Shown: in pieces, positions 5,608 to 43,000 of the stretch
How the letters are laid out: the number at the start of each line of letters is the position of its first letter
Position numbering within the stretch: the first letter of the stretch is position 1
DNA from: Lepidodermella squamata
Lineage: Eukaryota; Animalia; Gastrotricha
Assembly: GCA_047495785.1 (NCBI GenBank)
Contig: JBLDXI010000034.1
Span: 682,001-746,000, forward strand
Reading direction: 5' to 3'
DNA: 64,000 nt
Position numbers and translations under genes: made by a program
Notes under the pieces: generated by a model
The model's database searches: none
Seen by the model: the letters and a program-made list of their open reading frames with translations, nothing else
Told to the model about the DNA's origin: nothing

Positions 5608-6603
5608 ATGATTTTACTGATTTTCACCGCTCTTCTAGTTGCAGGAACTTACGGCTGCACTGTTCACACAACCCCTGCAGATTTGGGTGGAAACGGCGAT
5701 GTGGTCTATCTCGACCGCCATAGCGTTAAATGTCCAGAGCCTGATCAATTAATCGCAGCTTTCGGCCTGAAACGACCCCAATCAAACTTGATTTACTACG
5801 AATACACCTGCTGCCCTGTTCCAGTCATCGATCAATGCTACGAAAAAGTGAATTCATGGTCCGAGACGAAAAATGCGTACTATTTAGACCGGCAAACAGT
5901 CGATTGCGGCCGGAATGGATTTTTGAAAGAATTCAAGCTCGAACGGGAACATCGCGACAACCGGAAAATGAGATACCGCTACACGTGTTGTAGCGTCGGC
6001 GAAATCGGAACATGCGAAATGCAACACACGCAGTACAAAGATGACGGCGGTGGCAATGTTTTCTACCTGGACAGACATCACGCTCGTTGCCCGGATAACC
6101 ATCTGATGAACTGGTTTCATTTACAGCGGTCTTACCCAACAGGCATGTATCGCTACGATTTCGTTTGCTGCGATGTTCCTTTCGATATTTGCGGCGTTCC
6201 GGATGATCAATTTGAGAATATTTTCACATGTGATGCGTCTCGGTCTCAGGAAGCGATGACTTGCGCATTTTCGAAACGAACTGGTACAAGTAGGACTACA
6301 ACTTCCTCCCAGAAAACGATCAACACTAGGACCAGCCAAAAACTTGAGGAGGAGTTTAAAGACAATTTAGACCCAAGCAACTCGACATCGTACTTTTGGG
6401 GTATGGAGACGTCTGAGACGTTTAAGGAGGAGCAGACGTTCAGTGTTGAGACACGATGCTCGGCTGGTTCGATTTGCGAGATGCAGCAAATCGTTGGTTA
6501 CTGCGCTCATTATGCCGTCCGGGCTAACTACTTCCGACTTAAGACATCGCGCCCAAACACAAGATCGGTTAAATACGAAATCGTCAAACTTGGGCCTAAT
6601 TAA
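5608..6603 (+). CDS. Secreted Cys-rich protein: 3x YLDR[H/Q]xxxC...YxYxCC-like repeats plus C-terminal aerolysin/natterin-like beta domain
   Basis: Intronless 331-aa ORF with signal peptide and three clear internal repeats; the C-terminus is Ser/Thr-rich (TCD...TCAFSKRTGTS...YFW...SETF...QIVGYC); AATAAA follows at ~6634. Confidence 0.75.
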   Translation: MILLIFTALLVAGTYGCTVHTTPADLGGNGDVVYLDRHSVKCPEPDQLIAAFGLKRPQSNLIYYEYTCCPVPVIDQCYEKVNSWSETKNAYYLDRQTVDCGRNGFLKEFKLEREHRDNRKMRYRYTCCSVGEIGTCEMQHTQYKDDGGGNVFYLDRHHARCPDNHLMNWFHLQRSYPTGMYRYDFVCCDVPFDICGVPDDQFENIFTCDASRSQEAMTCAFSKRTGTSRTTTSSQKTINTRTSQKLEEEFKDNLDPSNSTSYFWGMETSETFKEEQTFSVETRCSAGSICEMQQIVGYCAHYAVRANYFRLKTSRPNTRSVKYEIVKLGPN

Positions 6604-7082: not shown

Positions 7083-9671
7083 ATGACGTCCTTGGTCAAA
7101 TACGCTGTTCTTGCACTTTATTGGACAATTTTACCGAGTTACTGCCACGAAGTTCCTTGGGCTACCGAAATACAAACAACCCCTCCAGGTTTGAGAGGAG
7201 CCCGCTGCTATATAAATCCTAATTCTATCATTTTTTCATGAATTACAGGAATTCGAGAGAATATCGGCCGGCCATCGTATACCCGCGAGTTTCTAATGTA
7301 ATTCGGGTCTTATATTACTGAAATTTCAGATCTGGCAAGAATTTATCTGCGTTTCCTGTTACGGATCTCGCGCGGAAGCCTCATACAGACGAGCAGCGGC
7401 TGCTACGCGATTTGATGACTGGCTACCTCATTTCAACTCGGCCCGTTCTCAAAAAGTCCACTTGCGTAACTGTAGGAATTGGCCTTACAGTGACGCAGAT
7501 TTTCGAGTTGGACGAGAAGAATGAGGTGCTTATCACTAATGTGTGGCTCGACCAAGAGTGGACGGATGAGTACTTACGCTGGGATCCTGCTAATTACAGG
7601 TAAATAGGAAATAAGAAACCGCTCTAAGGAGAATTCGGAATCCACATTTTTCTCTAGTGGCCTCTCCATGATTCGAATACCATCCTCGAAAATTTGGCTG
7701 CCCGGTATGCTCAATTGCATTTTTTCGAGGAATTTCAAAGACATTTTCTGTATTTTTTAGACATCGTCCTTTACAACAAGTAAAAGTCTATTGGATGATT
7801 GTTGTAGCGCCTTTTTTATTGAATTTCTTAGTGCTGCGGACTTCTCTGGGCGCTACATTGATACAAGAGCGATGATAGGGCATACGGGCTACATCTTTTG
7901 GCCGGTTCCTGTCAAACTGTTCAGCAGCTGTAAGGTTAATGTGAAGGTAAAATGCTAAAACCTAGAGAAATGCATACAAAATCGTGTCTTTCAACGCAGT
8001 ATTTCCCATTTGATGAACAAGTGGTAAGCATAATTTATAAAACTGTAAATATAAAGCTTGAATTTTCTTCATTGTTAGTGTCACATGAAATTCGGAAGTT
8101 GGACATACGGTAAACATTTGAATTTTGAATTTACAATCAGCCAATTTTCTAATTTTGTTGGTTTCGTAGACGGCTTCAAACTTGATCTCACAAATCGTTC
8201 GGAAGGCGTAGACCTCTCGAACTATATTGTCAGCGGAGAATGGGACTTACTCCGCGTTGAGCAGGTGTGCTGTTCAACTTTCCATCTCCTAAAATTACAA
8301 CAATTTTGTTCCCCATCAGTTTCGAAATGTTGTCACCTACACTTGCTGCGAGGAGCCATATCCGGTATGATTTTCATCGGCATTTCTAGAGAAAAAATTA
8401 TAAAAAGAATTTTTACACAGGATATGACATTTTACGTGAGTTGATCTAGATTTTCAATTGCAAAGTCTACAGTCTTATTTTCCTCTCCAGTTTTACATAA
8501 GACGAAAGACTCTATACTATCTCCACAACGTATTCTTTCCTTGCTTTGGTAGGTTAACTAATCACTTCTGAGAAAAAAAAATTGCATCTTTGATCCTCAG
8601 TTATGTCTTCACTAACGGTACTAGTGTTCCTTTTGCCTCCGGATTCGGGCGAAAAATGCGCGGTAAATGAATTTGCTGAACTGATATCTTAGAAACTCCC
8701 ATTTTTGAATAACAGCTCGGAATCACTGTGATGCTATCGTTTGCCGTGTTCATGTAAGTAATATTAGGCTATTCCAATGCGTTTTATATCAAATTGTTCC
8801 ATAGGCTGACTGTTATCGAAAAATTACCCGAAACATCCGAATCTGTACCTTTGATAAGTGAGTTTTTCACAAACACCCTTTTTTATTTAACAGCTTGTAT
8901 TTCACACAGAACTTTTATGCGTAATTTTCTATTTCCTGACAAATGAAAATGGGTGTATTAGCCATTTTTTTTTCAACGTTTTTAGGCATTTATTTGACTG
9001 TGGTCATGTCAATGACCGCTATTTCCGTCATTCTATGCGTTATCCTACTCAACCTCCATCACAAAACTGCAAGGAGTTCTCACGTCGCCGGGTGGGTACT
9101 GCGTTTCTTCGAAAAGATCGCACCCCTCATTTGCATGGACGACAAACGCCCACCGCCTCCAAGTTCCCACTACGACGACGAGTCATTCGAAGAGGACGTT
9201 GTGTATCTTGAGGACAAAATGCCGGCAAAATCGCCGAGCCATAGGTCCCACATGAGTGTTGCCTTTGACCTACCTGATGACGAAATCAGCTCGGACCAGT
9301 TACCGATCAAACAAACGACCAGTTGTTACGGTAGCATGTTAAATCAAGCGGAAAAAGCCTCCTTAATCTCCTCGACCTCAACCCATCAAGTCTTACGGCT
9401 GAGTTTGAACGATTTTATCACAGCTTTAGGCGGGGAGGTCGATGCTATTGGCACGGATATGTTCACTATCGCCCCGGATAAAGCTTTGGCTACAGCGATT
9501 GTTCGAATAATGGATAGGGAACGGAAAGACTCTGATGTCGAAGCGATGATCCAAGACTGGCGTCGATTGGCTGAAATCATCGATCGAATGCTGTTTTGGC
9601 TGTTCCTAATTATAACATTCTCATTCACTGTCTTCATCCTATTCGTAGCCCCGGCAGCTAAATTGCTCTGA
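7083..9671 (+). CDS. Nicotinic acetylcholine receptor alpha-type subunit (~16 exons)
   Basis: Spliced: EQRLLRDL, RPV, DEKNEVL..NVWLDQEWTDEYLRWDP, IWLP|DIVLYNN, CKVNVK|YFPFDEQV|CHMKFGSWTY, loop C YTCCEEPYP, IRRKTLYY, LPPDSGEK, PETSESVPLI, M4 DWRRLAEIIDRMLFW. Confidence 0.95.
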
Positions 9672-9817: not shown

Positions 9818-11048
9818 TTAATCACCAATTAGTGCGAGTAGCGTTTTCTTGTAATCCCCTGAAGTTTCGTCCTAATTGAACAAAAATCAATATATTACTA
9901 ATAGGCTTAGCATTGATCAAGCCAACCTGAACTGCACTGCCGAGAGATTTGCCGTACAATCGTTGGTATTCGCTTTTTACGTCTGCCAGATCGAAATCGC
10001 AGTGCATAACAATAAGGCGCATTAGTAGATTGTCTTTTGTTCCAGCTCCGACCATAGCATCGTGCAAACGATGGGCGAGAAAAGCAGGGCGATTCCTAAT
10101 TATATCGACTTGAAAAAAGAAAGATTAAGCTCTTTCGAAAGCGAAGAATTTTGAAAATCGAAAAATAATGAATTAAAAAATTTCAGAAATTTCAGAATAT
10201 TCTACTATTTAAAAAACGATTTTTCAAGCAAAAAACTAAATCTTAATGTTTTACCCATTGCTTCAAGGCCATAGGCAATATCTCCGCTGAATTCGCTCTT
10301 GATAACATCCGAAATGTCCTTCTTGTATTCCTGGCCATAGACTTCGAACGTCTCTCGCAGCTGAGCGTAACTTCGAGTGGTCAAAATCGAAATGAACCGG
10401 TTCTCATCCGTTCCAACTTTGTCCTGGCCAGCCTCGTAAAGTGTCTTGGCATCAACCAGCGCAGAAGCGTGGTCAACATTCGTACTGTTTGGCCGATTAC
10501 CGGCAATAACAGCATTCAGAAGGGCTCGGAAATCTCCGCTTGTATCTTTTGAAATCGCCTCTTGCAAAGGTTTTCCATAAACTGGAAGTCTCAAAATTCA
10601 AGCTCAATTAATTAGGAAAATTGCTTGGCTTACGTTCTTTGTACTTGAGTTCAATTGCGTTGAGATCGTCATTCGTTCGTGTGAAGAGAATCTCAACCAC
10701 AGAAGCTTCATCAGTGCCAAGACCCTCAATCGCATGATGAAGCTCCATAGCCGCTAGTTCAACAGGAGTCTTCAACAATCGCTCGATAACATGGTGAAAA
10801 TTGCCGCTGGTCTCGCTCGCAATATCCCGCTCGAGATCTCGACCGAGAACCGTCGCATAGACAGACTCGATCTCTTTACGTTGCTGCCACGATCGGTGGC
10901 AAAGGACAGCTATAATCGCGTCCTCATCCGTACCAGCGCCTTTCATAGCATTTCGAAGAGTCTCGCTGTCCTCTTTCGCGTTGAAATTCGGCTGCGGCTT
11001 AACAGTCGGCGAATGGCGCTCGGCCATGATAGTCTGCGGCATTGCCAT
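9818..11048 (-). CDS. Annexin (four annexin repeats, 4 exons)
   Basis: MKGAGTDE, IEGLGTDE, DKVGTDE and MVGAGTKD repeats; C-terminal ETSGDYKKTLLALIGD*; ATG at 11048 chosen over the upstream in-frame ATG at 11129. Confidence 0.95.
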
Positions 11049-11286
11049 TTTCGGGGTTGTAGAAATAGGTTTAGTAGCGGCTACGCGACTATTTGTGTGA
11101 TGATGTGACTGCTGCGTTGTGTGCTTCATTTTTTATAGCAATATCCGCGCCGATCAATTATTAATGACAGGAAATTGTACTGCTATGCCTTTTCCCGCAG
11201 GGAATAAAGCAAACATGTTCTGCCTTTATTGATCTTTCCGGTCAGATTTAATCATCCATGATTTTAGTGCAAAAATAAGCCACAGA

Positions 11287-11829
11287 TCATGGATTAACAT
11301 AAATCGATACGGGCTGGCCAATTTTTGTAAAATTAAGATTAACATGATAAAAAGCTCGGTTATGCGCGTTGATCACATTTTCACCAACCCCAATAACCAC
11401 ATGTTCGTAATTTTTCGTGAAAATCACAGATCCAGCCTTGACGCAGTCTTTAGTTGTGCCGCAATTCTTCCAGCCGAATGCTTTTAGGAACTCGTAAAGC
11501 CCAGGTTGGCCTCGATTTCGATTTGCAGCCCATTCCAGGTTGTAGCTAACGTTTTGAAATTTGTAATTTCGCAAGCTGTGGTGGAGGCTGTCGGTTTTTA
11601 GGCTGGGCAAATAACCCCCAGCGACGAGAGATCGCGTAACAAATTCAGCACACCTGTACTTGGTCTGATATCGTCCAGCCGGGAGCGTCTCCTCACAGGT
11701 GTAGTTCTTACAGTTCCATTGGCGGTCCGAGAATTCAATTAATGCCGTTGGATTTGGTTTCGCGAGCAGAATTTGTGCGGAAAGAAGGGCTACTGTAACA
11801 GCTAATATTACCGCTCCTAGCCGAGCCAT
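11287..11829 (-). CDS. Secreted NlpC/P60-superfamily putative amidase (Amidase_6-like)
   Basis: Intronless 180-aa ORF with signal peptide; YRCAEFVTRSLVAGG (candidate catalytic Cys), GSVIF, HVVIGVG, INAHN (His residues). Confidence 0.7.
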   Translation of the reverse strand: MARLGAVILAVTVALLSAQILLAKPNPTALIEFSDRQWNCKNYTCEETLPAGRYQTKYRCAEFVTRSLVAGGYLPSLKTDSLHHSLRNYKFQNVSYNLEWAANRNRGQPGLYEFLKAFGWKNCGTTKDCVKAGSVIFTKNYEHVVIGVGENVINAHNRAFYHVNLNFTKIGQPVSIYVNP

Positions 11830-12513
11830 TTTTCGATAATGTTTTAGAGCTTTTCACACCGCCACGCAATGTGCGTAACCTTTTGTACTCTTCAATGTTT
11901 GCGTTTTTGCCTCTATTCATGCAAAGCATACCTCTACCTGATGACGCGTTCACCTGGTTTTTTCATTACAATACGAGTTTGATGACGAAAGCGAAAATTG
12001 TTGGCTTCTGTTATAAGATACCAATACATATCATCATCACCACCAAGTGTTTACGGTTTATGTAAATGAGATGAGGATTTCAATTAGCTATTTACTATAC
12101 TGTCCAATGAATTAAAATGGCAATTGAGTGTTCTTGGGACTCAAAAAAACATCATGCCCTATCTGAGCTCGAAGACTTCGAGAGGTATCATTTTTTGTCC
12201 GAAAAAGGCCAGATTTACTGGACAATCGCCGATATGTGCTAGGGTAGAACCTAATCGCTTATCAGAGATCTCGGTCAGTATTCACGTTCTCGTAGTCCCA
12301 CATTCAACAGAGCAATCAAAGACGATTGATATGGGTAAAGAATTACTTATCGCACCAACAACACAACATACCTAGATTTCAGTAATTGCCTATTAAAGGT
12401 GTTGTTGCCTGATACATAAATTAACTCGTATCAGCGGCAATAAATACTCGAAGAATTTGCCGGTTTCGCGAGACAGAAAGCAGACATTTTTGTGACCTAT
12501 TTATTTGGAAAAA

Positions 12514-13578
12514 ATGGAAAAATCCTCAGCTCTAGCTCTTTGCGTCCTTGCTTTGGGCCTCATTGTAGGAGCCGCAGCTGTTTCTGAGAAGAATTTAGCA
12601 AAATATATCGAGTCAACGTATGCGCAAATTGGAAGATCTGGTCGTCCTGTTGTTGATCCGTAAGTGATTCAAGTCTCTCCACAATGTGAATTCACGCTCT
12701 ATTGTGTAGATCTCAAGCTATTCAAATCAACATTACAGTTCTGCTGAATCAAATTATCGACGAAGACGACGATTCTCTGACTATTGCTGTGTACCTTTTC
12801 ATGGTGAGATCATCTTAATTTGACCCGACTGAATGGAATCCTAAAATTGAAACATAGAAATGGCGCGATGAGTATATCAGCTGGGATCCTAACCAATACA
12901 ACGGCCAGACGTCTATTGTTTTGCCTATCGGTTCAATCTGGTAAATAAACGTTCGGGAGCTCATCTTATTTATGACATGTTGTCTTCTAGGAAACCTGAT
13001 GTCTTCATATGGAACGACTTCTACAACAACTGGGCCGATCAAAACCGTGAAATGGATGCTATCGATGTTTGGGTTTTCTACGACGGATCCATCGCCTGGA
13101 ACCCGACTGGTATCTATCGTGTTCTTTGTAACCCTGACAAAGGCTTCAAAACTCAGAAGGTTTCACCTTATTCCGCAATTTTTCGTTTTCACAGCATTTT
13201 CGATCTCTAGAATTGCACGTTCACATTTGGAAGCCTGACCCATAACATCAACGAAATGGATGTTATATTCGAGGGTGGCCTAGCCGATTTCAATATGACG
13301 GTTTTGATGCCGACCCCTGGTATTGATGTCGTGGCTCATTCAGCCCAGAAAGTCATCGCTGATTTCGATATTCCACGCTCTCATACCAAGTACTGGAACA
13401 TGAACTACAACTTGGGTGAGTGATATTTTCATTACATTGAGCGGGTTTCAATTTTTGAATTATTTTAGTTGTGAGTATCGACAAGGAGCTGTCTCCCGAT
13501 CGCAAAACGCTGAAAAGTGCTCAGAGCAATTACAGGCGGCCATTTTTCGCTATGCCACGAACCCAGACGTTCAACTGA
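12514..13578 (+). CDS. Soluble Cys-loop ligand-binding-domain-only protein (AChBP-like), 6 exons, ~268 aa
   Basis: Exons 12514-12659, 12710-12803, 12858-12940, 12991-13159, 13211-13415, 13469-13578 (807 nt, in frame, all GT-AG). Signal peptide, GRPVVDP, KWRDEYISWDP, IWKPDVFIWN, CNPDKGFKTQKNCTFTFGS. Stop follows a polar tail with no TM; AATAAA at ~13718. Confidence 0.88.
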
Positions 13579-13941
13579 TTCAACGATGACTAGTTATAAG
13601 GCGGATAAAGACAATGACCTTCTCATTAGTTATCGCGATGTTGACTGCTATTTTAGAAAATTATCTCTGTCTGCTACCGTAATGAGATAGTTTAGTTTAG
13701 GGCGTGACCAAGGAGAGAATAAAAGCAAATTGATACGCAAAGCAAACAACCATGCAAGCAATGCTGTAATTAATTTAACATGTCTTACTAAACTTTCAAA
13801 CTCTAATTCTTGGCGTATACAAAGGTGAAATCAACTTATCAATCCATCGATTTGCAATAAAGAAGAGGTTTGATGGCTTTCAAACTCCTCAGCTATGAAT
13901 ACTTTTAAGGTATTCTAAGATAATTGCTGCCATTATTTTAG

Positions 13942-16900
13942 ATGATTCTGACAAGAATGCTCCTAATAATGGCAATGCCATTCCTAAGCTGCACTTACAG
14001 CTTAATTCTCGATGGTGAGTTAAGCTGTATTTATGCGTTATGTTGTTCATGTTTTCCGTAAAAAGATTCGAATACGAGATCTTCATCCAATCGCGCTGGA
14101 AACAGCAAGTTTTAGTCATACCAGTTTTCAGCGAATTATGTTGAGTTAATATTAGTTTGCGCGAATGACGACGTGTGCTCTTTTGGGAGGTGTATCAATG
14201 GGTATTGTTACTGCGCCGAAGAACTCGGAGGCCCAACTTGCATTGAGGAAGGTAGCTGAGGCTCGTCGTCAGGTGTATTATTTCCATAGCTCGTTTTTTC
14301 TTGATAGATGGACCCGTTTGTTCTTCACCTGACAGTCCACTCGCCTCGACTTTCCCACCATGTGTTAGAGGCACGTGTGACGACTCTACTCGCAAATGCA
14401 AATGCGAAGACGGCTGGGTAGGACAATACTGCGAAAGTACGAGATATCAATTACTTCTATGTTCTAATTGATGCTAACGGGAGATCCGCATTGGAATTTA
14501 CAGCTGATCAAACTAGGCCCACAACAGAGAGACCACCTGAACAAGGCGACAGTAAGAAACTGCTTGATAAAGCTCGTAAATAATCCACTATCATCTTCTT
14601 AACTAGTTTGCGACAATACTGGAACTAAAAATTGTGCGCCGGCTGGTGTTTGTGTGAACGGCTACTGTTTCTGCCGAGAGGGCTATGGTGGAACAACTTG
14701 TGCTGACCCTGGCGGTGTCATGTGCCGGACATCTAAAGTTGCTAGTTCGCAAAAATCTCCGAGATGTCAAGGTACTGGCAGCAACTGCGTTGTTTCCGAA
14801 GAGAACGGTAAACAAACTAGTCGTTGCGACTGCGCTGGTGGCCGAACTGGTCGTTACTGCCAAGGTGAGTGAGGACTCTGTCTGACTCTGTCTCATCAAA
14901 GATACTGACTAAAATAGATGTGCCGGGAGAGCCTACATACCCAATACCAACAACAACGCCAAAGCCTGGCACTAGTAAATCCCCTTTTCATCTATATAAT
15001 CATGGCCAGTGTTCAATCTTTCTAGAGTGTACCACGGATAAAGATTGCCAAGATCGAGGCAAGTGCTCAAATGGATACTGTTATTGCAAGGAGCCCTATT
15101 CAGGCCCAGTTTGCGAGGCCCAAGGTGGGGAAGATAATGAGTAAAACTGATGCTCTTTTTTTTTTTAAATTGATTCTTCATAAGATACATATATTTGTCG
15201 GACGCCGGAAGTTGGCGAATCGGCCGAGGGCCCTTCGTGTCTCAATGATGGCAATTGCAAGGTTGTCAGCGGCAGTGGACCAACCACTAAAACCGAATGC
15301 GTTTGCTCACCTGGCTATAGCGGGCGATTTTGTGAAGGTATGTTCGAGCTTAAAAAGCAGAAAGCAGAAGTATAACGAAAATCAATGAAAAAACAAATAT
15401 CACCACCTTGTTGGAAAAAAGAGGTAGATTATGGTGATACACTGAGGCCCACAACCTGAACTCACCTGAAAATTATGAATCCATTATTCAGTGTTTCTTC
15501 AATCTCAAATATTTCCATACGTTTCTCCGAGATTCTTACTTGGTGCTTAGGAATTAAAGCTAAAGATTCTTTTTTTCTGCACAGTCGAGTCATCAGGACA
15601 TGGCAATAGTAAAGACGCATGGAAAATTCCACCGTCTAATGATAGATTTTCTTAGTTTGCACCAATGACCAGCAATGTTCCTTTGGGTATTGCACCAACG
15701 GCTACTGCTATTGCCCAGATGGACTCGGGGAAGTGAATTGCCTGGTGGCAGGTATAACGAAAAAGCTTTAATATCCACAATTTTTAACGATTGAATTGAT
15801 AACAACCAGATGGTCCCGTTTGTGCGTCACCGGAAAATCCGCTCTCTATGCAATACCCACCGTGTGCGCAAGGAACTTGCGATGACACGACTCGAAAATG
15901 CAAGTGTGACGACGGCTGGGTAGGGCAATACTGTCAAAGTAAGCGGTTTCAATCATCAAAATGGATAAATAAAAAAATACCTAAATATCGGAAATCCCCA
16001 GCCGATTCAACGAAACTCACAACAGTAAACACGCCTGAACCTGGAAAAAGTAATGCATTTCTTTAGGATCTCACAATGCACATAACTGTTCTTATAAATG
16101 AGCCAGTTTGCGACGAGAGCAGCAATTTATCTTGCGCTCAGAATGGCGTTTGTTTGAATGGTTACTGCTTCTGCAGAGATGGGTGGGGCGGATTAACTTG
16201 TGCTGAAGAGGGCGGTGTTATGTGCTGGACTTCTGAGGTTCCAAGTTCGCTTAATTCCCCGAAATGCCAAGGCTCCGGCAGTCAATGTGTTGTTTTCGAA
16301 TCGAACGGTAAACAAACAAGCCGATGCGAATGTGCTGGTGGCCGCTCAGGTCGATATTGCCAAGGTCAACTGACATTTCCTTCACTAGGGATAAATTCGT
16401 ATTTATTGTCACTTTTTATAGATGTTCCAGGTGAACCCCCGGTAACTATTCCAACAACAACGCCGAAACCTGGGAATAGTAAATTTAAAATCGATTAGTT
16501 TAGAAAGAATAATGTTTGATCATTTCAGAGTGCACAGCCAATACGGATTGCCAAAACGGAGGCACATGTTTTAACAAATATTGTTATTGCAAAGAACCTT
16601 ACTCTGGCCCCGTGTGCGAGGCCCAAAGTAAGAATGACAATCAGCATGAAGCTACCCTTGCATATCTCTCCTTACCAAGATACTTACATCTGCCGAACTC
16701 CAGACGTTGGGGAATCAGGTGACAGCCCTCCGTGTTTTAATGCTGGTACTTGCCAAGTGGTGAGTGGCAGTGGACCTACGGCGAAAACCGAATGCGTTTG
16801 TCCTAATGGGTTCAGCGGACGATATTGCGAAGGTAAGGGTGATCTAAAAAAATCGATATTTTCTAGAAGGAGATCATAGTTTTCTACGCACTTATTTGCT

Positions 16901-19900
16901 ACCTTCAAAAATTAAATACGCCCAATTAGCCCCCATGTGTAAGAAGGGTGACCAGATATGGGGCTGATTACAGGGATAGAAAGGAAGCAAGATTAATCAA
17001 ATTTACTCAGGAGTAAAAGTCACCTTCTTGTAAGGTTTTTCAATTAAATATTCCCGAAGGTTTTATGGGATCATGGGATCTGAACATACGCAGTCGATTC
17101 ATTGTACCCTGTTACTATCCCCTTTTTCCCTGAAGACTTAAACCAGATAACAGTAAAAGATCCGGAGCTTAATACTTTTAATGAAATAGAGCCAGCGACG
17201 GAAGAACCTGTGTTTACAACCGTGGCTGAACCTGAGGTTACCATCTGGGAACAGACTACTGCAGCTGAAACAGAGGTGACCACTGGGGATCAGATCACAA
17301 CGGCAGACGAACCAGAAACTACAACTACTAGGAAACCAAATGGACATGGCGCGAGTAAGAACGCATGGAGAATCAAACCGCCTAATTATAGCTTTTCTTA
17401 GTTTGCACCAATGACCAGCAATGTAACTCTGGGAATTGCATCAACGGTTATTGCTACTGTCCAGAAGGACTAGGGGATGTGAATTGCCTAGTTGCGAGTA
17501 AGCTTGATTACCTGAATTTTAAATTATTAAATAATCATATTTCAATGAGATGGTCCGGTTTGTGCGACACCTGTGAGCCCTCTCGAGTCCGTTTATCCCC
17601 CTTGCGAGACAGGAACTTGTGATGACATAACTCGAAAATGCGTGTGCGACGACGGTTGGGTAGGGCAATACTGTCAAAGTATGTGGTTTTTATCATCAAA
17701 ATTCATGGACAACAATAAAAAAATTTACAGCCAATACGTCGAAACCCACAACAGTCCAACCACCTGCGCCTGGAGATGGTGATGCATCTCGTTTGAGATC
17801 TTGTACTTTAATCGGCTAGCTTTTAAATCAGTTTGCGACGAGAGCCAGAACAAATTCTGCGCTCCAACTGGTGTTTGTGTAAATGGTTTCTGCTTCTGCA
17901 GAGAGGGTTGGGGCGGAACAATGTGTGCAGAAGAGGGTGGTGTCATGTGCCGGGCAGTAGAGGTTCCGAGTTCGTTTAAATCCCCGAAATGTCAAGGCTC
18001 GGGTAGTCAATGTGTCGTGTTCGAATCGAACGGTAAACAAACCAGCCGATGCGAATGTGCTAATGGCCGCACCGGTCGATATTGCCAAGGTCAGCATAAT
18101 CAGTTGACCTAACATGGATAGGTTTTCATTGCTAATAATTTGCGGTAGATGTTGAAGGTGAACCGCCAGTGCCTACTACTACGCTGAAACCTGGAAACAG
18201 TAATAACAACATAAATTCTCCGATCTGATCTAATATATATGCTATTAATTAAGAATGTAAAACTGATACGGACTGCCAAGATCGAGGCGTGTGTTCCAGT
18301 GGGTACTGTCATTGCAAGGCACCTTATTCTGGCCCTTCGTGCGGAGAACAAGGTATGTATTTCTTTGATGAGAATAAGCGATTACGATAAGCATTTCTTG
18401 TTTCAGACACACTAGTATGCCGCGCTTCGACGATCCCAGAGTCGGGCGACAATCCTCCCTGCTACAACGGTGGGACATGCATAGTGAAAAGTGGTAGTGG
18501 CATCAACGCTAAGACAGAATGTCAATGTCCTTCCGGCTTCAGTGGCCGATTTTGCCAAGGTACGTCGAGGGCGATTATACTAGTGGATATTTGCGCGATA
18601 TTTAACCCATCTCAGTGGAATTCTTAAGTCTTAAGTCCAGAAAGAATGTGGTCCTAAGTCATAATTAGACCAAGATAGTGTGTCGAAAGGAAAGGCAATG
18701 AAAATGAAATTAGAACAATAAAAAGTCACATAGACCTTTTTATTCAATTAACAAATCCATAGAGCGAAGTAGGAACCCCAGGAACAGATTACGAAAATCG
18801 ACGTAAGGGTCCCCCTTTGGTCTTTGACTGAACCTTGAGGAAATTTCAAACTGGTGGGGATGATCCATCTACCTTCCCTAGCTGTACTTAGCTCTCTGAA
18901 CAAATCAGCCCAGTCTCGATCATCAGGATGGTGGGGGAAATAGAGATGTATCGAACGACGCAGGCGAGCTTCTGCAAAAACGACACCAAAAGAGCATCGG
19001 GCGCATGTCATTTGCAACGACCAGGCGCTCGGAGCCCATGCGTTGAAATGGCCCTTTGAATAACCCTTTGCATTTGCAGAACAGGAGGCTACAACAGCGG
19101 TGGAACCTGAGGCTACAACTGTTGAAGAACCTGAAGCTACAACAACGGCGGAACCTGGAGCTGCAACGGTCGAAGAAACTGAAGCTACAACGGCGGCGGA
19201 ACCTGAAGCTGCAACGGTCGAAGAAACTAAAGCTACAACAACGGCGGAACCTGGAGCTACAACGGTCGAAGAAACTGAGGCTACAACGACGGCAGAACCT
19301 GAAGCTACTACGGTCGAAAAAACAGAAGCTACAACTGCAGGGGAAGCAGAATTTACAACTTCAGTAGAAGCCAGGACTACAACTGCAGAGGAATCAGAGG
19401 CTACAACAGAATTAACCACGCTAGGCGAACCGGATTTTACAACATCTGCAAAACTTAATGATGCAACTACGACAGTGGTTACTGATCCTGAACAATCGAC
19501 AGCAGCTCCTGGCCAGACCACATCGGCGGCTATTGAAATCGTCATATGTGAGTTTATTAACTAACTATTCGGTTGTCTCTCTATTGCAATGATTTTTTGA
19601 ATCAGCATGGTGTTTGAAGCTTTATCATAATAATTTAGCGCTATTTTTCCTTCAATCGAATTCTATGTATATATCTTTTTCTGAAAAGCTCTTAAAATCA
19701 CATGATGGTAGGTATTTTAGTAGTCTGCCGTTTGAAGTTTAATCTTTTCCGCAGTTGCCTAATTTCCTTGGTGTTTTCTCGGGAAATGGTACTGGTATGA
19801 GTAAAGTAAATCTATCGTTGTTAATGTTACTCTAACAAGAACATGGTATTAGTTTTAGCTTCTTGTAAAAGCTGATAGTGTACCTTTGTCATAATAACTA

Positions 19901-20911
19901 ATTTCGCGAACTATATATTTTAGACATATCAGCGCAGCTAGCGACTAATCAAATCGTCATAGACGGAAAGCAAATCAAATGGCAGGTCGACATGGCAGAC
20001 ACATCATCTCAAGCCTTCATCGCTGTTAGCAAAATTTTCGAATCTCAAATCGAAGAAATTCTGCTAATCGCCGAGCTCCAACCAATTGATGTTTCAGTTA
20101 CTGAGTTGAGGTTATAATTATTTCGTAGCTTTAAATGTCATCTCAAGCTTCTCCCTTTTTAATCAGAGCGTACAGAATGAATTATTTCAGCAGAGCCGAT
20201 GAAGGCATTAAGGCTTACTACAGAGCTCGCGTGCTTGACGTGCGAAATGCCTATGTTTTAAATGGAAAGGTTGACAAAGCGTTACTCCGATCCTCGATCG
20301 ATGCAGCTAGCGAAGCTCACAAGGCAAGTGATTCATTCAAAATCACTTTTGGCGAAGATGGACAAATTTTGTATCATGATGTCGATAATGCAATAATTAT
20401 TGGTAAGTACTGTTGTTACATTTATCCACTTCTAAAGTTGTAATCCTTGCAGTTCAACCGACCACCGAGCCTAACCCGGTTCTTGAAAGCTGGGAAATCG
20501 CTCTAATTGCTGTTTTCGGCGTTGCGTTTCTTGCCATCGCTGCGGGAGCTGCAGTTTTCTACCTGAGAAAGCGGCGGAAGCTTGAATCAAAGTCGCATGA
20601 TGAAGGGCAAGATCAAGCGATGACTGAATTTGCGGCACCAAAAGCCATTGATCAGGTGAAGGATGACGATCAAGGAGTGGCTACTCCGATGACTTATGCA
20701 GTAACCCCTGCTCCGGAGTACGGAAAGGTATCTGCCAATGAAATATTGCAAGCACCGGTAATTAATCCGAAACCTACTCAGCCAAGGTTCATTTATAAGA
20801 AGTGTTTTTTTCCAGATTTACGATGCGCCTGGTGATTATTTACGTTTCAATCCTGGAGTAAATCTATACGCCCAAATGTATCGCGATTCGTTACCGCAGA
20901 CAGAATTTTAA
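13942..20911 (+). CDS. EGF-mucin-SEA-TM protein A (3 tandem cassettes of ~6 EGF-like modules, short EPEATT mucin, SEA-like domain, TM, tail)
   Basis: Signal MILTRMLLIMAMPFLSC; cassettes at ~14156-15337, ~15585-16832 and ~17402-18559; mucin exon ~19080-19547; SEA-like WQVDMADTSSQAF; TM WEIALIAVFGVAFLAIAAGAAVFYL; last exon ends ...LPQTEF*. Confidence 0.88.
18760..18895. mobile_element. Short MITE-like element, copy 1 (intronic)
   Basis: Imperfect inverted termini agagcgaagta / tacttagctct; internal taagggtccccc shared with the copy at 27418-27560 and with 52531. Confidence 0.45.
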
Positions 20912-21780: not shown

Positions 21781-22188
21781 ATGCGAAGAACCGTCACTGA
21801 TGGATTTATAGGTCTGATATTGACACGATAGCCTTCAGATCGCTGCCAAAGTTTCAGAAACAAAATGGAAACATTGGCTATATCGATTTCTTACGATTGT
21901 TTTTTGAGCCAAAATCGAGTGTCATTTTGTCGTGGCAAAATAGGTAATGTTGTTCGAGTAAAATGCTAACCGGATTCTAAGAATCTGCAGTAAAAATCTC
22001 TGGAAATGTGAAATCCTGAATAAATAAAAGAATTTTCGGGTTTTGAATATTACGCATGCTTATATATTAGAGTAAACTGCAAACTGCTTGCTAGTGAATT
22101 ATATAACATTAGCTAACACCCGTCTTGCTGACACCGAGCTGTTATTTTACGAAAAATGCACGTAGAAACAAATCAGTTGCTTAATGTC

Positions 22189-23530
22189 ATGTGGTTGATT
22201 CGAAGTCTGACAGCGTTCGTCGTACTCATTCTCGTAACAACTACAATATCTCAGAGCGAAGACAACTCGCTACAAAGTAGTTACTGGCCCCCAGGCGAAG
22301 AATTCACGCAGTCGCTGATAACACGGTGCCATTTGAAGACGAAAACGCGCCCGTCGATAGATTTCGACGATGCGACGAACGTCACCGTCGACGCGTACCC
22401 GTATCGCTTCACCGGAATTTTCGACAAGGAGCAAACGTGAGTTGATGTCGCACTTTGTTGACACGCGGTTGACATTCTTTCTAGGTACTCGATTATGATG
22501 CAGATCGATTTCACGTGGCAGCACCCGTGTTCTCATTGGAGCGCAAATGAAAGCAGGCTTGCAGTGTTCGTACTTCGGAATGCTGGTATCCGAGGGTTCA
22601 GCATATCAACGCGAACGACGATTACTCGAAGCCATCCAAGTAAGAGCTTTGCCTGGTTTTATAGAAATTAGAAACTAGAAAAAAATTGAATCGGTTTCTT
22701 TTACATTGCCATCTTTTTTACGTACTTGTATTTTCTCAGCGTGATAGAACCATTCGGCAAGCTCTACGTCGACAGTACAGGCATGATAATGCTGGCTGTA
22801 GTTTTTGAACTCAACTCATTCTGCCCTTTGAAGTTTTCCACCCGAAATGTCGTAGTTTCCTATTTTACGCAATTTCTGCTTTTCAGATTGGAGAAATTTC
22901 CATTCGACACTCAACACTGCCGCGTGGTAATCGAATCATGGTACGCCGCTACGGATGTTCGTTTCCAACTGCCGGCCAACCAGAGCAATCTCGACGACAG
23001 GATCGGCGTCGATTTCCTGTCAGCCAATGACATTTGGCAGTTGATCGAAACTAACGCAAGTGTTGTTGTGTTCACATTCAGCGGTGACGCAACAAACACG
23101 AAGCTTTACCGGGCCGTCTACGAGTTCACGTACCGCCGCAAGTCAGCTTCTTACATCATGAGCATTTTCCTGCCCAGTTTTGCCCTTTTGTCGCTAATGC
23201 TGGCGGTTTGGGTGATGCCACCCGAACACCCTGATCGTCCTGGGTTCTGTATGACTGTCGTCCTCTCATACACCGTTCTACAGTCAATCGTATCCGATTC
23301 TCTGCCGACATCTTCCGAGTTAGGCTACACCCTGATTTTCATGGGCGTGCAAATGGTGACCGGGTGCATTTGCACCATCTACGCTCTTGTTACGTGCCGA
23401 AAGGAGGAAAATTCCTCTGCGAGTCATGAAAATTAGTCTTCTCCGTTTTATTGACCTGCTTTTCTTTCTCTCACTGCTGGTAGCGATAGCGATCATGGAT
23501 GGCGTTATTTTCTTCAATATGTTGTCATAA
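22189..23530 (+). pseudogene. Divergent Cys-loop channel subunit with two frameshifts
   Basis: Signal peptide, TRP, DKEQT, spliced CPLK|LEKFPFDTQHC, RRKSASY, MPPEHPDR, M1-M3. One frameshift near 22557 (ESRL vs CSVRTSECWYPRV) and one near 23425 (SHEN* vs MKISLLRFIDLLFF, M4), with no introns available to rescue either. Confidence 0.75.
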
Positions 23531-37036: not shown

Positions 37037-40000
37037 TTAGAGAAAATCGGCCTCGTCATCAACCTGAAAATAGAATAGGTAACGTAAACCGCAAAGATCT
37101 TTCAAGATTTCTACCTCTTGAGAAACATCTGGATGTACTTCTGCTGTCGCCGCAACGGTTGATACCCTTCCAAAGTCAGGTCTTGGCATTTTTGGATACG
37201 TCATCGATGAAATGAGGCTTTGTTCGGCTAGTGCGCCGTCTTGAGCCGGGGCAGGCTCTGCCGTTAAATTTCCTTGTTCGCTATCTGAGAGCTCATTCCC
37301 ATGTTTGCTAGCCTGTCTCAGGTATAATACGGCAGCCCCAGTGGCAATTACGAGTACAATACCACCAAAAACAGCTATTAGAACGATTTCCCAAACTTCC
37401 AGTTGCGCGTTGGTATATTCGACTTTAATCGATCAATTAAAAGTTAAAGCAAATGTAAATATAGCCTGGCTTACCTATTCTCACTGCTTCTTCGACATTG
37501 TGTTCTAGAATGGCTCCATCTTGGCCGAAAGCTGCTTTGAAAGAATCTGTTTCGGAATGCTTAACTCCTGCTGCTGCAACTGATTTCTGTATTGCGTCTT
37601 TGTCTACCGCACCATTATCGCCGATATAGGTCCGTTTCTCGTCAATCGCTGTTGCTTTGTAATAGGCGCGAATTCCGGAATTGCTGTCGTAGAAAATCAA
37701 GGCCAGCAGTGAAGGGACATTGTATTCCCTGAGTGTAATAAAATAAACGTCAATTAATCGAAACTAAGAATGATAGCGCTTACTTGAGCTCGGTTACGGA
37801 GACCTTAACTGGCGTCAGCTCAGCGATAAGCAGAATTTCCTTGATTTGAGATTCGAAAGTTTTGCCGACTTCAACGAATAATTGTGAGGAATTGTCAGCC
37901 ATTTCATCGCTCCATTTATACATTTGATTGCCGACAATTACTTGGCTGGTAGCAAGCTGAGCTGATATCGCTAAAATAACACAGCAACAGTATTAGCCAA
38001 AATTACACTGCGTATAAAGTCACAATGAAATTGATGCAATAGAGACAGTGTGAACGCGAAAAATAATGGCATATAACATATAATACGGTGAAACTCACAT
38101 ATGAGAACCGAATTAGCAAGGGATGTAGTTTGGCCAGGGTCGACTGTTGTCACAGCCGACTTCGTAGTAGTGGCTACGGGTTCCCCAGCGGTAGTGGCTC
38201 CGGTGACCTCCGGTTCTCCAGCAGTGGTCGCCTCAGTTACTTCGGGAACTGCAGTGGTCGCCTCGGTTACTTCGGGAAGTGCAGTGGTCGCCTCAGTTAC
38301 TTCGGGAACTGCAGTGGTCGCCTCAGTTACTTCGGCTTCCCCAGCTGTAGTCGCATCAGTTACTTCGGCTTCCCCAGCTGTAGTCGCATCAGTTACTTCG
38401 GCTTCCCCATCTGTAGTGGCGTCTGTTATCTCAGATTCTCCAGCAGTGGTTGCTTCTGGCTCGGCCACACTTGTCGCTTCAGGCTCGGCAACGGTGGTAG
38501 CTTCTGGAACAGCAAGGGTTGTCGCATCTGGATCGGCAACAGTTGTTGCTTCTGGATCAGCAACGGTTGTCGCTTCTGGCTCGCCAACGGTGGTAGCTTC
38601 TGGCTCGCCCACGGTGGTAGCCTCTGGATCAGCAACGGTTGTCGCTTCTGGTTCGGCAACGGTGGTAGCTTCAGGTTCAGCTACGGTTGTCGCTTCTGGA
38701 TCAGCCACAGTTGTCGTTTCTGGCTCGGCAACCGTGGTAGCTTCAGGTTCAGCTACGGTTGTCGCTTCTGGCTCGCCCACGGTGGTAGCTTCTGGTTCAG
38801 CTACGGTTGTCGCTTCTGGCTCGCCCACGGTGGTAGCTTCAGGTTCAGCTACGGTTGTCGCTTCTGGCTCGCCCACGGTGGTAGCTTCTGGATCGGCAAC
38901 AGTTGTTGCTTCTGGATCAGCAACGGTCGTCGCTTCTGGCTCGCCCACGGTGGTAGATTCTGGATCGGCAACAGTTGTCGCTTCTGGATCAGCAACGGTC
39001 GTCGCTTCTGGCTCGCCCACGGTGGTAGATTCTGGATCGGCAACAGTTGTCGCTTCTGGTTCAGCTACGGTTGTCGTTTCTGGCTCGCCCACGGTGGTAG
39101 CTTCTGGTTCAGCTACGGTTGTCGCTTCTGGCTCGCCCACGGTGGTAGCTTCAGGTTCAGCTACGGTTGTCGCTTCTGGCTCGCCCACGGTGGTAGCTTC
39201 TGGATCGGCCACAGTTGTTGCTTCTGGATCAGCAACGGTCGTCGCTTCTGGCTCGCCCACGGTGGTAGCCTCTGGATCAGCAACGGTCGTCGCTTCTTGC
39301 TCGCCCACGGTGGTAGCCTCTGGATCAGCTACGGTTGTCGCTTCTGGATCAGCCACAGTTGTCGTTTCTGGCTCAGCAACCGTGGTAGCTTCAGGTTCAA
39401 CAACGGTTGTCGCTTCTGGTTCGGCCAGGGTTGTCGCTTCTGGCTCGGCAACCGTGGTAGCTTCTGGATCAGCAACGGTCGTCGCTTCTGGTTCGCCCAC
39501 GGTTGTAGCTTCAGGTTCAGCAACGGTCGTCGCTTCTGGCTCGGCAACCGTGGTAGCTTCTGGATCGGCAACCGTGGTAGCTTCAGGTTCAGCTACGGTT
39601 GTCGCTTCTGGCTCGCCCACGGTGGTAGCTTCAGGTTCAGCAACGGTCGTCGCTTCTGGCTCGCCCACGGTGGTAGATTCTGGATCGGCAACAGTTGTCG
39701 CTTCTGGTTCAGCTACGGTCGTCGCTTCTGGCTCGCCCACGGTGGTAGATTCTGGATCGGCAACAGTTGTCGCTTCTGGATCAGCAACGGTCGTCGCTTC
39801 TGGCTCGCCCACGGTGGTAGATTCTGGATCGGCAACAGTTGTCGCTTCTGGTTCAGCTACGGTTGTCGTTTCTGGCTCGCCCACGGTGGTAGCTTCTGGT
39901 TCAGCTACGGTTGTCGCTTCTGGCTCGTCCACGGTGGTAGCTTCAGGTTCAGCTACGGTTGTCGCTTCTGGCTCGCCCACGGTGGTAGCTTCTGGATCGG

Positions 40001-43000
40001 CCACAGTTGTTGCTTCTGGATCAGCAACGGTCGTCGCTTCTGGCTCGCCCACGGTGGTAGCCTCTGGATCAGCAACGGTCGTCGCTTCTTGCTCGCCCAC
40101 GGTGGTAGCCTCTGGATCAGCTACGGTTGTCGCTTCTGGATCAGCCACAGTTGTCGTTTCTGGCTCAGCAACCGTGGTAGCTTCAGGTTCAACAACGGTT
40201 GTCGCTTCTGGTTCGGCCAGGGTTGTCGCTTCTGGCTCGGCAACCGTGGTAGCTTCTGGATAAGCAACGGTGGTAGCTTCTGGCTCGCCCACGGTGGTAG
40301 CCTCTGGATCAGCAACGGTTGTCGCTTCTGGTTCGGCAACGGTGGTAGCTTCAGGTTCAGCTACGGTTGTCGCTTCTGGATCAGCCACAGTTGTCGTTTC
40401 TGGCTCGGCAACCGTGGTAGCTTCAGGTTCAGCTACGGTTGTCGCTTCTGGCTCGCCCACGGTGGTAGCTTCTGGTTCAGCTACGGTTGTCGCTTCTGGC
40501 TCGCCCACGGTGGTAGCTTCAGGTTCAGCTACGGTTGTCGCTTCTGGCTCGCCCACGGTGGTAGCTTCTGGATCGGCAACAGTTGTTGCTTCTGGATCAG
40601 CAACGGTCGTCGCTTCTGGCTCGCCCACGGTGGTAGATTCTGGATCGGCAACAGTTGTCGCTTCTGGATCAGCAACGGTCGTCGCTTCTGGCTCGCCCAC
40701 GGTGGTAGATTCTGGATCGGCAACAGTTGTCGCTTCTGGTTCAGCTACGGTTGTCGTTTCTGGCTCGCCCACGGTGGTAGCTTCTGGTTCAGCTACGGTT
40801 GTCGCTTCTGGCTCGCCCACGGTGGTAGCTTCAGGTTCAGCTACGGTTGTCGCTTCTGGCTCGCCCACGGTGGTAGCTTCTGGATCGGCCACAGTTGTTG
40901 CTTCTGGATCAGCAACGGTCGTCGCTTCTGGCTCGCCCACGGTGGTAGCCTCTGGATCAGCAACGGTCGTCGCTTCTTGCTCGCCCACGGTGGTAGCCTC
41001 TGGATCAGCTACGGTTGTCGCTTCTGGATCAGCCACAGTTGTCGTTTCTGGCTCAGCAACCGTGGTAGCTTCAGGTTCAACAACGGTTGTCGCTTCTGGT
41101 TCGGCCAGGGTTGTCGCTTCTGGCTCGGCAACCGTGGTAGCTTCTGGATCAGCAACGGTCGTCGCTTCTGGTTCGCCCACGGTTGTAGCTTCAGGTTCAG
41201 CAACGGTCGTCGCTTCTGGCTCGGCAACCGTGGTAGCTTCTGGATCGGCAACCGTGGTAGCTTCAGGTTCAGCTACGGTTGTCGCTTCTGGCTCGCCCAC
41301 GGTGGTAGCTTCAGGTTCAGCAACGGTCGTCGCTTCTGGCTCGCCCACGGTGGTAGATTCTGGATCGGCAACAGTTGTCGCTTCTGGTTCAGCTACGGTC
41401 GTCGCTTCTGGCTCGCCCACGGTGGTAGATTCTGGATCGGCAACAGTTGTCGCTTCTGGATCAGCAACGGTCGTCGCTTCTGGCTCGCCCACGGTGGTAG
41501 ATTCTGGATCGGCAACAGTTGTCGCTTCTGGTTCAGCTACGGTTGTCGTTTCTGGCTCGCCCACGGTGGTAGCTTCTGGTTCAGCTACGGTTGTCGCTTC
41601 TGGCTCGCCCACGGTGGTAGCTTCAGGTTCAGCTACGGTTGTCGCTTCTGGCTCGCCCACGGTGGTAGCTTCTGGATCGGCCACAGTTGTTGCTTCTGGA
41701 TCAGCAACGGTCGTCGCTTCTGGCTCGCCCACGGTGGTAGCCTCTGGATCAGCAACGGTCGTCGCTTCTTGCTCGCCCACGGTGGTAGCCTCTGGATCAG
41801 CTACGGTTGTCGCTTCTGGATCAGCCACAGTTGTCGTTTCTGGCTCAGCAACCGTGGTAGCTTCAGGTTCAACAACGGTTGTCGCTTCTGGTTCGGCCAG
41901 GGTTGTCGCTTCTGGCTCGGCAACCGTGGTAGCTTCTGGATCAGCAACGGTCGTCGCTTCTGGTTCGCCCACGGTTGTAGCTTCAGGTTCAGCAACGGTC
42001 GTCGCTTCTGGCTCGGCAACCGTGGTAGCTTCTGGATCGGCAACCGTGGTAGCTTCAGGTTCAGCTACGGTTGTCGCTTCTGGCTCGCCCACGGTGGTAG
42101 CTTCAGGTTCAGCAACGGTCGTCGCTTCTGGCTCGCCCACGGTGGTAGATTCTGGATCGGCAACAGTTGTCGCTTCTGGTTCAGCTACGGTCGTCGCTTC
42201 TGGCTCGCCCACGGTGGTAGATTCTGGATCGGCAACAGTTGTCGCTTCTGGATCAGCAACGGTCGTCGCTTCTGGCTCGCCCACGGTGGTAGATTCTGGA
42301 TCGGCAACAGTTGTCGCTTCTGGTTCAGCTACGGTTGTCGTTTCTGGCTCGCCCACGGTGGTAGCTTCTGGTTCAGCTACGGTTGTCGCTTCTGGCTCGT
42401 CCACGGTGGTAGCTTCAGGTTCAGCTACGGTTGTCGCTTCTGGCTCGCCCACGGTGGTAGCTTCTGGATCGGCCACAGTTGTTGCTTCTGGATCAGCAAC
42501 GGTCGTCGCTTCTGGCTCGCCCACGGTGGTAGCCTCTGGATCAGCAACGGTCGTCGCTTCTTGCTCGCCCACGGTGGTAGCCTCTGGATCAGCTACGGTT
42601 GTCGCTTCTGGATCAGCCACAGTTGTCGTTTCTGGCTCAGCAACCGTGGTAGCTTCAGGTTCAACAACGGTTGTCGCTTCTGGTTCGGCCAGGGTTGTCG
42701 CTTCTGGCTCGGCAACCGTGGTAGCTTCTGGATAAGCAACGGTCGTCGCTTCTGGTTCGCCCACGGTTGTAGCTTCAGGTTCAGCAACGGTCGTCGCTTC
42801 TGGCTCGGCAACCGTGGTAGCTTCTGGATCGGCAACCGTGGTAGCTTCAGGTTCAGCTACGGTTGTCGCCTCTGGCTCGCCCACGGTGGTAGCTTCAGGT
42901 TCAGCTACGGTTGTCGCTTCTGGCTCACCCACGGTGGTAGCTTCTGGATCGGCAACAGTTGTTGCTTCTGGATCAGCAACGGTTGTCGCTTCTGGATCGG

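Follow-up and report, generated by a model that had tools for sequence, protein, structure and literature searches.

In the window, that is, the whole stretch of 64,000 nucleotides of Lepidodermella squamata DNA analysed here, the gene at positions 12514-13578 encodes what we consider, at a probability of about 60%, to be a secreted ligand-binding domain from the nicotinic branch of Cys-loop receptors, free of any membrane part, that resembles the acetylcholine-binding proteins (AChBPs), is a putative extracellular binder of a ligand other than acetylcholine, and represents the deepest branch of a family of soluble proteins. The initial annotation had likewise read this gene as a soluble AChBP-like protein with a remodelled pocket, and this part of its proposal stands, as the gene is expressed, selected and devoid of a membrane part, while the independent derivation that it placed beside a nicotinic alpha gene is not supported.

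We found that the window gene is transcribed, is spliced as modelled, and has a terminal exon and a 3' UTR of its own. Located at 12514-13578 on the forward strand, its six exons, when joined and translated, yield an open frame of 268 codons that runs to a TGA, with GT..AG at every intron border. Upon comparing the contigs of three public runs (X1, X2 and X3) with positions 12200-14150 (1951 letters), we observed that X1 and X3, which come from two other studies than X2, cover only the exons of the gene; X2, a DNA run from which the assembly may have been built, contains the full 12200-14150 stretch unchanged. The X1 and X3 contigs carry the joints 12659>12710, 12803>12858, 12940>12991 and 13159>13211, and the fifth intron appears as reciprocal loose ends at 13415 and 13468, whose letters spell the first bases of exon 6 and the last bases of exon 5, respectively. 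One X1 contig stops at 12470 and then reads GGTATCAACGCAGAGTACATGGGG, which we take to be the 3' portion of the SMART template-switch oligo; X1 is accordingly cDNA, with transcription beginning at about 12470. A TATA-like element upstream of this point may act as a promoter element of the gene. The features are as follows, all on the forward strand:

12439..12446 (+): TATA-like AATAAATA, read from the sequence, preceding the cDNA 5' end by ~24-31 nt
12470..12513 (+): 5' UTR; at 12470 an X1 contig runs into 24 loose letters of template-switch oligo
12514..12659 (+): exon 1, with the start codon and the N-terminal helix containing IGRSGRPV; joint 12659>12710
12514-12582 (+): putative signal peptide of ~23 aa in exon 1, with hydrophobic core ALALCVLALGLIVGAAA, judged by eye
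12710..12803 (+): exon 2, strands beta1-beta2, with Tyr at the loop-D position (AVYL) versus Trp in channels
12858..12940 (+): exon 3, with the conserved W-x-D...W-D-P core; PF02931 at 16.3 bits; joints seen in cDNA
12991..13159 (+): exon 4, with loop A, the family-specific insert NNWADQN and the first Cys-loop cysteine; PF02931 at 20.2 bits
13010-13012 (+): Trp115 in loop A (Tyr in channels), from the exon 4 translation and the alignments
13127-13129 (+): first Cys-loop cysteine, in exon 4
13211..13415 (+): exon 5, with the second Cys-loop cysteine, loop B, and loop C without a Cys-Cys pair
13214-13216 (+): second Cys-loop cysteine, within an N-C-T sequon, in exon 5
13235-13237 (+): Leu173 in loop B (Trp in channels), in exon 5, aligned to C-NLTFGSWTYN of alpha-9
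13469..13578 (+): exon 6, with the end of beta10, a hydrophilic basic tail of 30 aa and the TGA; loose ends 13415/13468
13579..13745 (+), end approximate: 3' UTR, with contigs covering 13550-13712
13718-13723 (+): AATAAA in the 3' UTR

Both the joined frame and the confirmation of all five introns by cDNA-type contigs bear out the intact six-exon ligand-binding domain without a transmembrane region that had been claimed from the sequence, and the polyadenylation signal said to lie downstream is the AATAAA close to which the contigs end. Unbroken contigs span exon 6, the stop codon and the 3' UTR as far as 13712, the contig depth is low in the bin 13718-13783, and it is zero at 13784-14150; the poly(A) site is approximate, since contigs cannot fix the exact end. 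Splicing to downstream transmembrane exons, which the initial annotation had named as a way in which its reading could fail, was looked for, and the X1 and X3 contigs showed no joint or loose end from exon 5 or 6 to any other exon within 12200-14150; as the runs are assembled contigs, a rare isoform could be missed. No membrane segment (M1-M4) occurs in the 268-codon frame or in the spliced transcript.

The window gene is one of at least 11 intact membrane-less genes for nicotinic-type ligand-binding domains in this genome. Exon 5, used as a query, turned up a locus on contig C6, and exon 4 one on C15; both genes encode a signal peptide and the same N-terminal helix (..LAK..GRPV..), followed by the ligand-binding domain, and terminate shortly past beta10. 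The family loci (labelled L001, L004 and L026-L033) lie on contigs C6, C15, C75, C42, C9, C17, C33 and C29, as follows for those other than C6:

C15: three loci in all, from the exon search of the genome
C75: a near-identical copy of one C15 locus, seen as a search match only
C42: four loci, namely a tandem pair and two more, from the exon search; three of them are in the alignments
C9, C17, C33: one membrane-less locus each, from the exon search of the genome
C29: one locus with an in-frame TAA stop, a probable pseudogene, from the exon search of the genome

At every family locus, the stop falls within a few residues of beta10 and is followed by unrelated genes or repeats, with no TM-like ORF within ~2.5 kb downstream. 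Five further candidates (C24, C10, C9b, C15d and C2) were rejected as soluble relatives, all of them being full channels. Downstream of the C15-group genes (L004, L026, L027), we also noted tRNA-like or SINE-like elements in many copies, which translate to SWLERQSHNLEVVSSILTGGS.

The homology of the window protein to ligand-binding domains is clear indirectly, from local comparison with its paralogues. Family scans and large searches were run exon by exon, and the joined 268-aa translation was used in local alignments and trees. PF02931 scored 16.3 bits on exon 3 and 20.2 bits on exon 4, both under the cut-off of 26, while exons 4 and 5 weakly matched nicotinic subunits among solved structures, where the alignment to alpha-9 pairs C-NLTFGSWTYN with C-TFTFGSLTHN of exon 5. 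Local phmmer comparisons of the whole protein, by contrast with these single-exon scores, gave 135 bits to the soluble C6 gene, 104 to a C15 gene and 103 to a channel on C16, and it is from these three values that the assignment follows; the neighbouring alpha subunit reached 45. The main exon of C6 itself scored 91 bits on PF02931, and an ESM Atlas look-up of it returned PF02931 again and nothing more. Word-index protein searches with the C6 exon and with the family profile gave no matches, which is weak evidence of absence and says little, as such searches require shared 5-mers and a length window. An AlphaFold model of the C6 main exon, built on a shallow family alignment, had a mean pLDDT of 58, too low for use in a fold search.

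The faintness of these matches bears on the notion that a truncated duplicate of a receptor gene is decaying here, transcribed but functionless. In its favour, Pfam sees only two exons, both below threshold, the hallmarks of the pocket are lost, and exon 5 has no relatives among 1.84 billion representative proteins, against which it returned only three repetitive proteins as summed chance matches, a blank that weighs little given the word and length filters of the search. We nevertheless consider such decay very improbable, given that the frame is intact over 268 codons and six exons with all canonical splice sites in use, that its branch is long yet unbroken, with the other clade members intact too, and that both haplotypes of the gene occur in cDNA from two studies and differ almost entirely at synonymous positions. 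Specifically, X1 and X3 each carry two mRNA forms, one identical to the window and one variant, that are set apart by 17 base differences in 15 codons, of which 14 are synonymous and the remaining three fall in one codon, changing Ser106 to Val in exon 3. With ~173 synonymous and 631 non-synonymous sites, this amounts to a ratio of roughly 0.05, indicating that the window gene is under purifying selection; the absence of expression and a dN/dS near 1, against which the initial annotation had asked its reading to be measured, are thus not what we observed. As high-identity matches of exons 4 and 5 occur at the window locus only in the 121-Mb assembly, making the gene single copy, the variant is an allele or population haplotype and not an assembled paralogue. 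Within the soluble family, the more recent pairs have dN/dS values of 0.13-0.57.

In maximum-likelihood trees that combined the soluble genes with 24 channel domains of this genome, the window gene was the earliest branch of the clade of at least 11 membrane-less genes. The soluble genes formed one clade with three genes (97/94), with nine (98/93) and with eleven (97/91), the nine- and eleven-gene trees being computed with two rows of very long branches (L007 and L025) left out, and the window gene was sister to the other ten (97/91). The C16 channel was in turn sister to the soluble clade (86/81 to 95/93). The clade was kept at an SH-aLRT of 87 when the columns of the Cys-loop and of the loop-A insert were removed. 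Since the 24 channel domains were sampled from more than 160 ligand-binding-domain loci (itself a lower bound), an unsampled channel could fall inside the clade. Further shared characters support the clade: the window gene, C6 and C15 are all interrupted behind the N-terminal helix at one and the same codon and in one phase, the window gene and C6 also agree in the codon position and phase of their last intron, and an insert after loop A that ends in DQ is present in the window gene and in the aligned C6, C15, C42 and C9 genes. Most simply, the channel part was lost once, in an ancestor held in common with the C16/C7 channel, and duplications followed. This closest full channel (G000:C16:995.7k) carries YYSCC and TM helices and has a near-identical twin on C7. 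The two copies, L002 (C16:993.5-999.5k) and L003 (C7:1554.5-1560.5k), are collinear, and several other ligand-binding-domain loci also occur as pairs of identical score, a pattern suggesting that the assembly retains haplotypes or includes large duplications of recent date.

A nicotinic alpha gene does lie about 3 kb from the window gene, as had been noted from the sequence, and it is separated from it by two genes on the minus strand:

7083-9671 (+): complete nicotinic alpha subunit, with YTCC, a C-x13-C loop containing YFPFDEQ, and M1-M4, 2.8 kb upstream of the window gene
9822-11129 (-): annexin gene, between the alpha subunit and the window gene
11287-11829 (-): secreted single-exon ORF of 180 aa with no Pfam match, between the alpha subunit and the window gene
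13900-20835 (+): EGF-like gene of three tandem ~1.7 kb units with Thr/Pro-rich linkers, next downstream

Derivation of the window gene from this alpha neighbour was rejected. The neighbour is distant at only 45 bits, against 135 for C6 and 103 for C16, and the independent derivation that the initial annotation had proposed gives way to membership in a clade of at least 11 genes. Nor do the introns coincide: those of the alpha gene close to W-x-P-D, to the second Cys and to beta10 are displaced by 1-3 codons from those of the window gene or differ from them in phase. The EGF-like gene on the other side ends in a C-terminal single-pass membrane anchor (IALIAVFGVAFLAIAAGAAVFYL) and has no channel helices.

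The binding site of the window protein departs from that of the channels at several positions, and here the residues read in the initial annotation were recovered in both translation and alignments. The Cys-loop, C154-NPDKGFKTQKN-C166, has 11 residues between its cysteines and is hydrophilic, with FPFD absent, as had been stated. Loop B reads FGSLTH versus FGSWTY in channels, and loop A reads FIWN versus VLYN. The mature protein contains two cysteines only, which leaves no vicinal pair. The loop-C Tyr positions are occupied by Phe and Tyr and the loop-D Trp by Tyr, such that four of the five positions of the aromatic box are still aromatic. Across the soluble family, the Cys-loops range from 8 to ~32 residues and none contains FPFD. 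The loop-C Cys-Cys pair is kept in six members (C17, C33, the three C42 genes and C9) as well as in the sister channel; the window gene, C6 and the C15 group lack it, which on the tree corresponds to three separate losses. In structural work on nicotinic receptors and AChBPs, the loop-B Trp is the main cation-pi contact with acetylcholine; it is kept in the channels and in all ten other family members, and is replaced, by Leu, in the window protein only.

These residues weigh on whether the protein could still bind acetylcholine and, in the manner of a conventional AChBP, buffer or scavenge cholinergic ligands, as described for the glial AChBP of snails. Such a function would fit with the retention of the loop-B Trp, the loop-C Tyr and the Cys-Cys pair in several family members, with the Capitella and Bulinus AChBPs being the best solved-structure matches of some of them, and with the aromatic residues that the window protein itself keeps at loop A, at both loop-C positions and at loop D. 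Yet in FGSLTH, not only is the Trp changed to Leu but the adjoining Tyr is changed to His, the Cys-Cys pair is missing, and the protein is the one of 11 members that lacks the main cation-pi contact, and we therefore regard a cholinergic AChBP as unlikely. As the loop-B Trp is Leu and the Cys-Cys pair is gone, the ligand is most likely not acetylcholine, though weak cholinergic binding may be retained, given the aromatic residues at four of the five box positions.

The mature window protein is ~28 kDa and acidic (pI 5.0) and has three N-x-S/T sequons, one of which lies on the second Cys, as in nicotinic subunits. It could alternatively be a truncated subunit that acts inside the secretory pathway, where it would co-assemble with full-length nicotinic subunits and modulate their assembly or surface expression. 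The N-terminal helix and the subunit-contact faces of the beta-sandwich are kept, and the nearest non-soluble relative is a full alpha-type channel, both of which are in line with such a role. However, the C-terminus has no ER-retention motif, the sequence ending in TQTFN, the hydrophilic Cys-loop lacks the FPFD that makes the contact with the membrane domain, and the identity of ~31-34% to the nearest relatives suggests diverged interfaces. We judge this role to be unlikely, and slightly less probable than that of a cholinergic AChBP.

We thus favour an extracellular protein with an altered pocket. The window protein would be exported, like AChBPs, and would assemble via the conserved faces of its beta-sandwich, probably as a pentamer, with a small ligand held at the subunit interfaces. 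This ligand would most likely be some small compound other than acetylcholine, partly hydrophobic or capable of aromatic stacking. Outside the cell, the protein may thus bind, buffer or scavenge its ligand, working alongside sister proteins in which the cholinergic residues are kept.

AChBPs are used as structural stand-ins for nicotinic receptors, and include those of Lymnaea, Aplysia, Bulinus, Biomphalaria and Capitella (PDB 1i9b, 2br7, 2bj0, 4aod and 4afg). Like these mollusc and annelid proteins, the window protein consists of a putative signal peptide and a stand-alone ligand-binding domain of nicotinic-type sequence, with the membrane region absent and a short, hydrophilic Cys-loop without FPFD; the Cys-loop of Lymnaea AChBP has 12 residues, compared to 11 here. 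Unlike them, it has the loop-B Leu, no Cys-Cys pair in loop C, and a basic tail of 30 aa, and it comes from a clade that numbers at least 11 genes within a single genome. With the nicotinic alpha subunits (C16/C7) it shares the same domain, the IGRSGRP motif, and Q-x-N-C-T-x-x-F-G-S at the second Cys, and exon by exon its best solved-structure matches are nicotinic alpha subunits; it differs from them in lacking M1-M4, the Cys-Cys pair and the loop-B Trp, and in its 11-residue Cys-loop without FPFD as opposed to 13 residues with FPFD in a nicotinic channel. A precedent for a non-synaptic role of the AChBP fold is the ACC-binding protein of the pearl oyster, an AChBP homologue that reportedly acts in biomineralisation, although we saw no sign of a mineral-binding role for the window protein.

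Upon comparing the relatives with solved structures, a C42 member matched Capitella AChBP (4afg) at 45 bits and Bulinus AChBP at 42, both above any receptor, and a C15 member had Bulinus AChBP (2bj0) as its sole match. The best match of C6 was nicotinic alpha-9 at 69 bits, with Capitella AChBP at 47, and the family profile likewise scored nicotinic alpha-9 highest (101 bits), ahead of Capitella AChBP (86 bits). The AChBP matches are ambiguous between common origin and convergence, since shortened Cys-loops alone could favour them.

Before a putative AChBP was described in a spider, molluscs and one annelid were the only reported sources of AChBPs, whose Cys-loops vary in length (PMC4569296). 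The spider protein, CsAChBP of Cupiennius salei, has a Cys-loop of 16 residues and is seen as a transcript only, from a single gene (PMC4569296). Like CsAChBP, the window protein is a membrane-less nicotinic-type domain from outside molluscs and annelids with a Cys-loop of atypical length, but unlike that single gene, it is part of a family in which cholinergic residues were lost repeatedly. The expanded nicotinic genes of molluscs display many domain combinations (PMC6896357).

We tentatively suggest, as a broader and less certain scenario, an old radiation from one nicotinic channel, independent of the mollusc and annelid AChBPs, that shed cholinergic residues repeatedly (the Cys-Cys pair thrice, the loop-B Trp once) and gave rise to a repertoire of soluble pentameric binders, each suited to other small molecules, with the window gene as its oldest member and with a ligand other than acetylcholine. 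A family of at least 11 such proteins in another small invertebrate would provide natural soluble scaffolds with different pockets that are small and likely to crystallise. As its members gave up acetylcholine-binding residues independently, the family would also be a tractable system for the re-tuning of a neurotransmitter site. To look for ligands, one would best start with the window gene, as it has changed most and branched off first.

Elsewhere in the window, several elements were seen alongside these genes:

5608-6603 (+): an ORF of 331 aa that starts with a signal peptide and contains a ~55-aa repeat, built on YLDR..V.C ... Y.Y.CC, three times, with no Pfam match
22156-23436 (+): a divergent orphan Cys-loop channel gene with EKFPFDTQHC and M1-M3 in one exon, and with weak Pfam scores
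38444-51364: a 13-kb array of a 24-nt unit in ~538 copies, with a G+C of 0.58 and a strong AT skew
19100-19564 (+): an EPEATT repeat similar to the 38444-51364 array

On the minus strand, the 13-kb array reads as VAEPEATT repeats, resembling a giant mucin-type exon.
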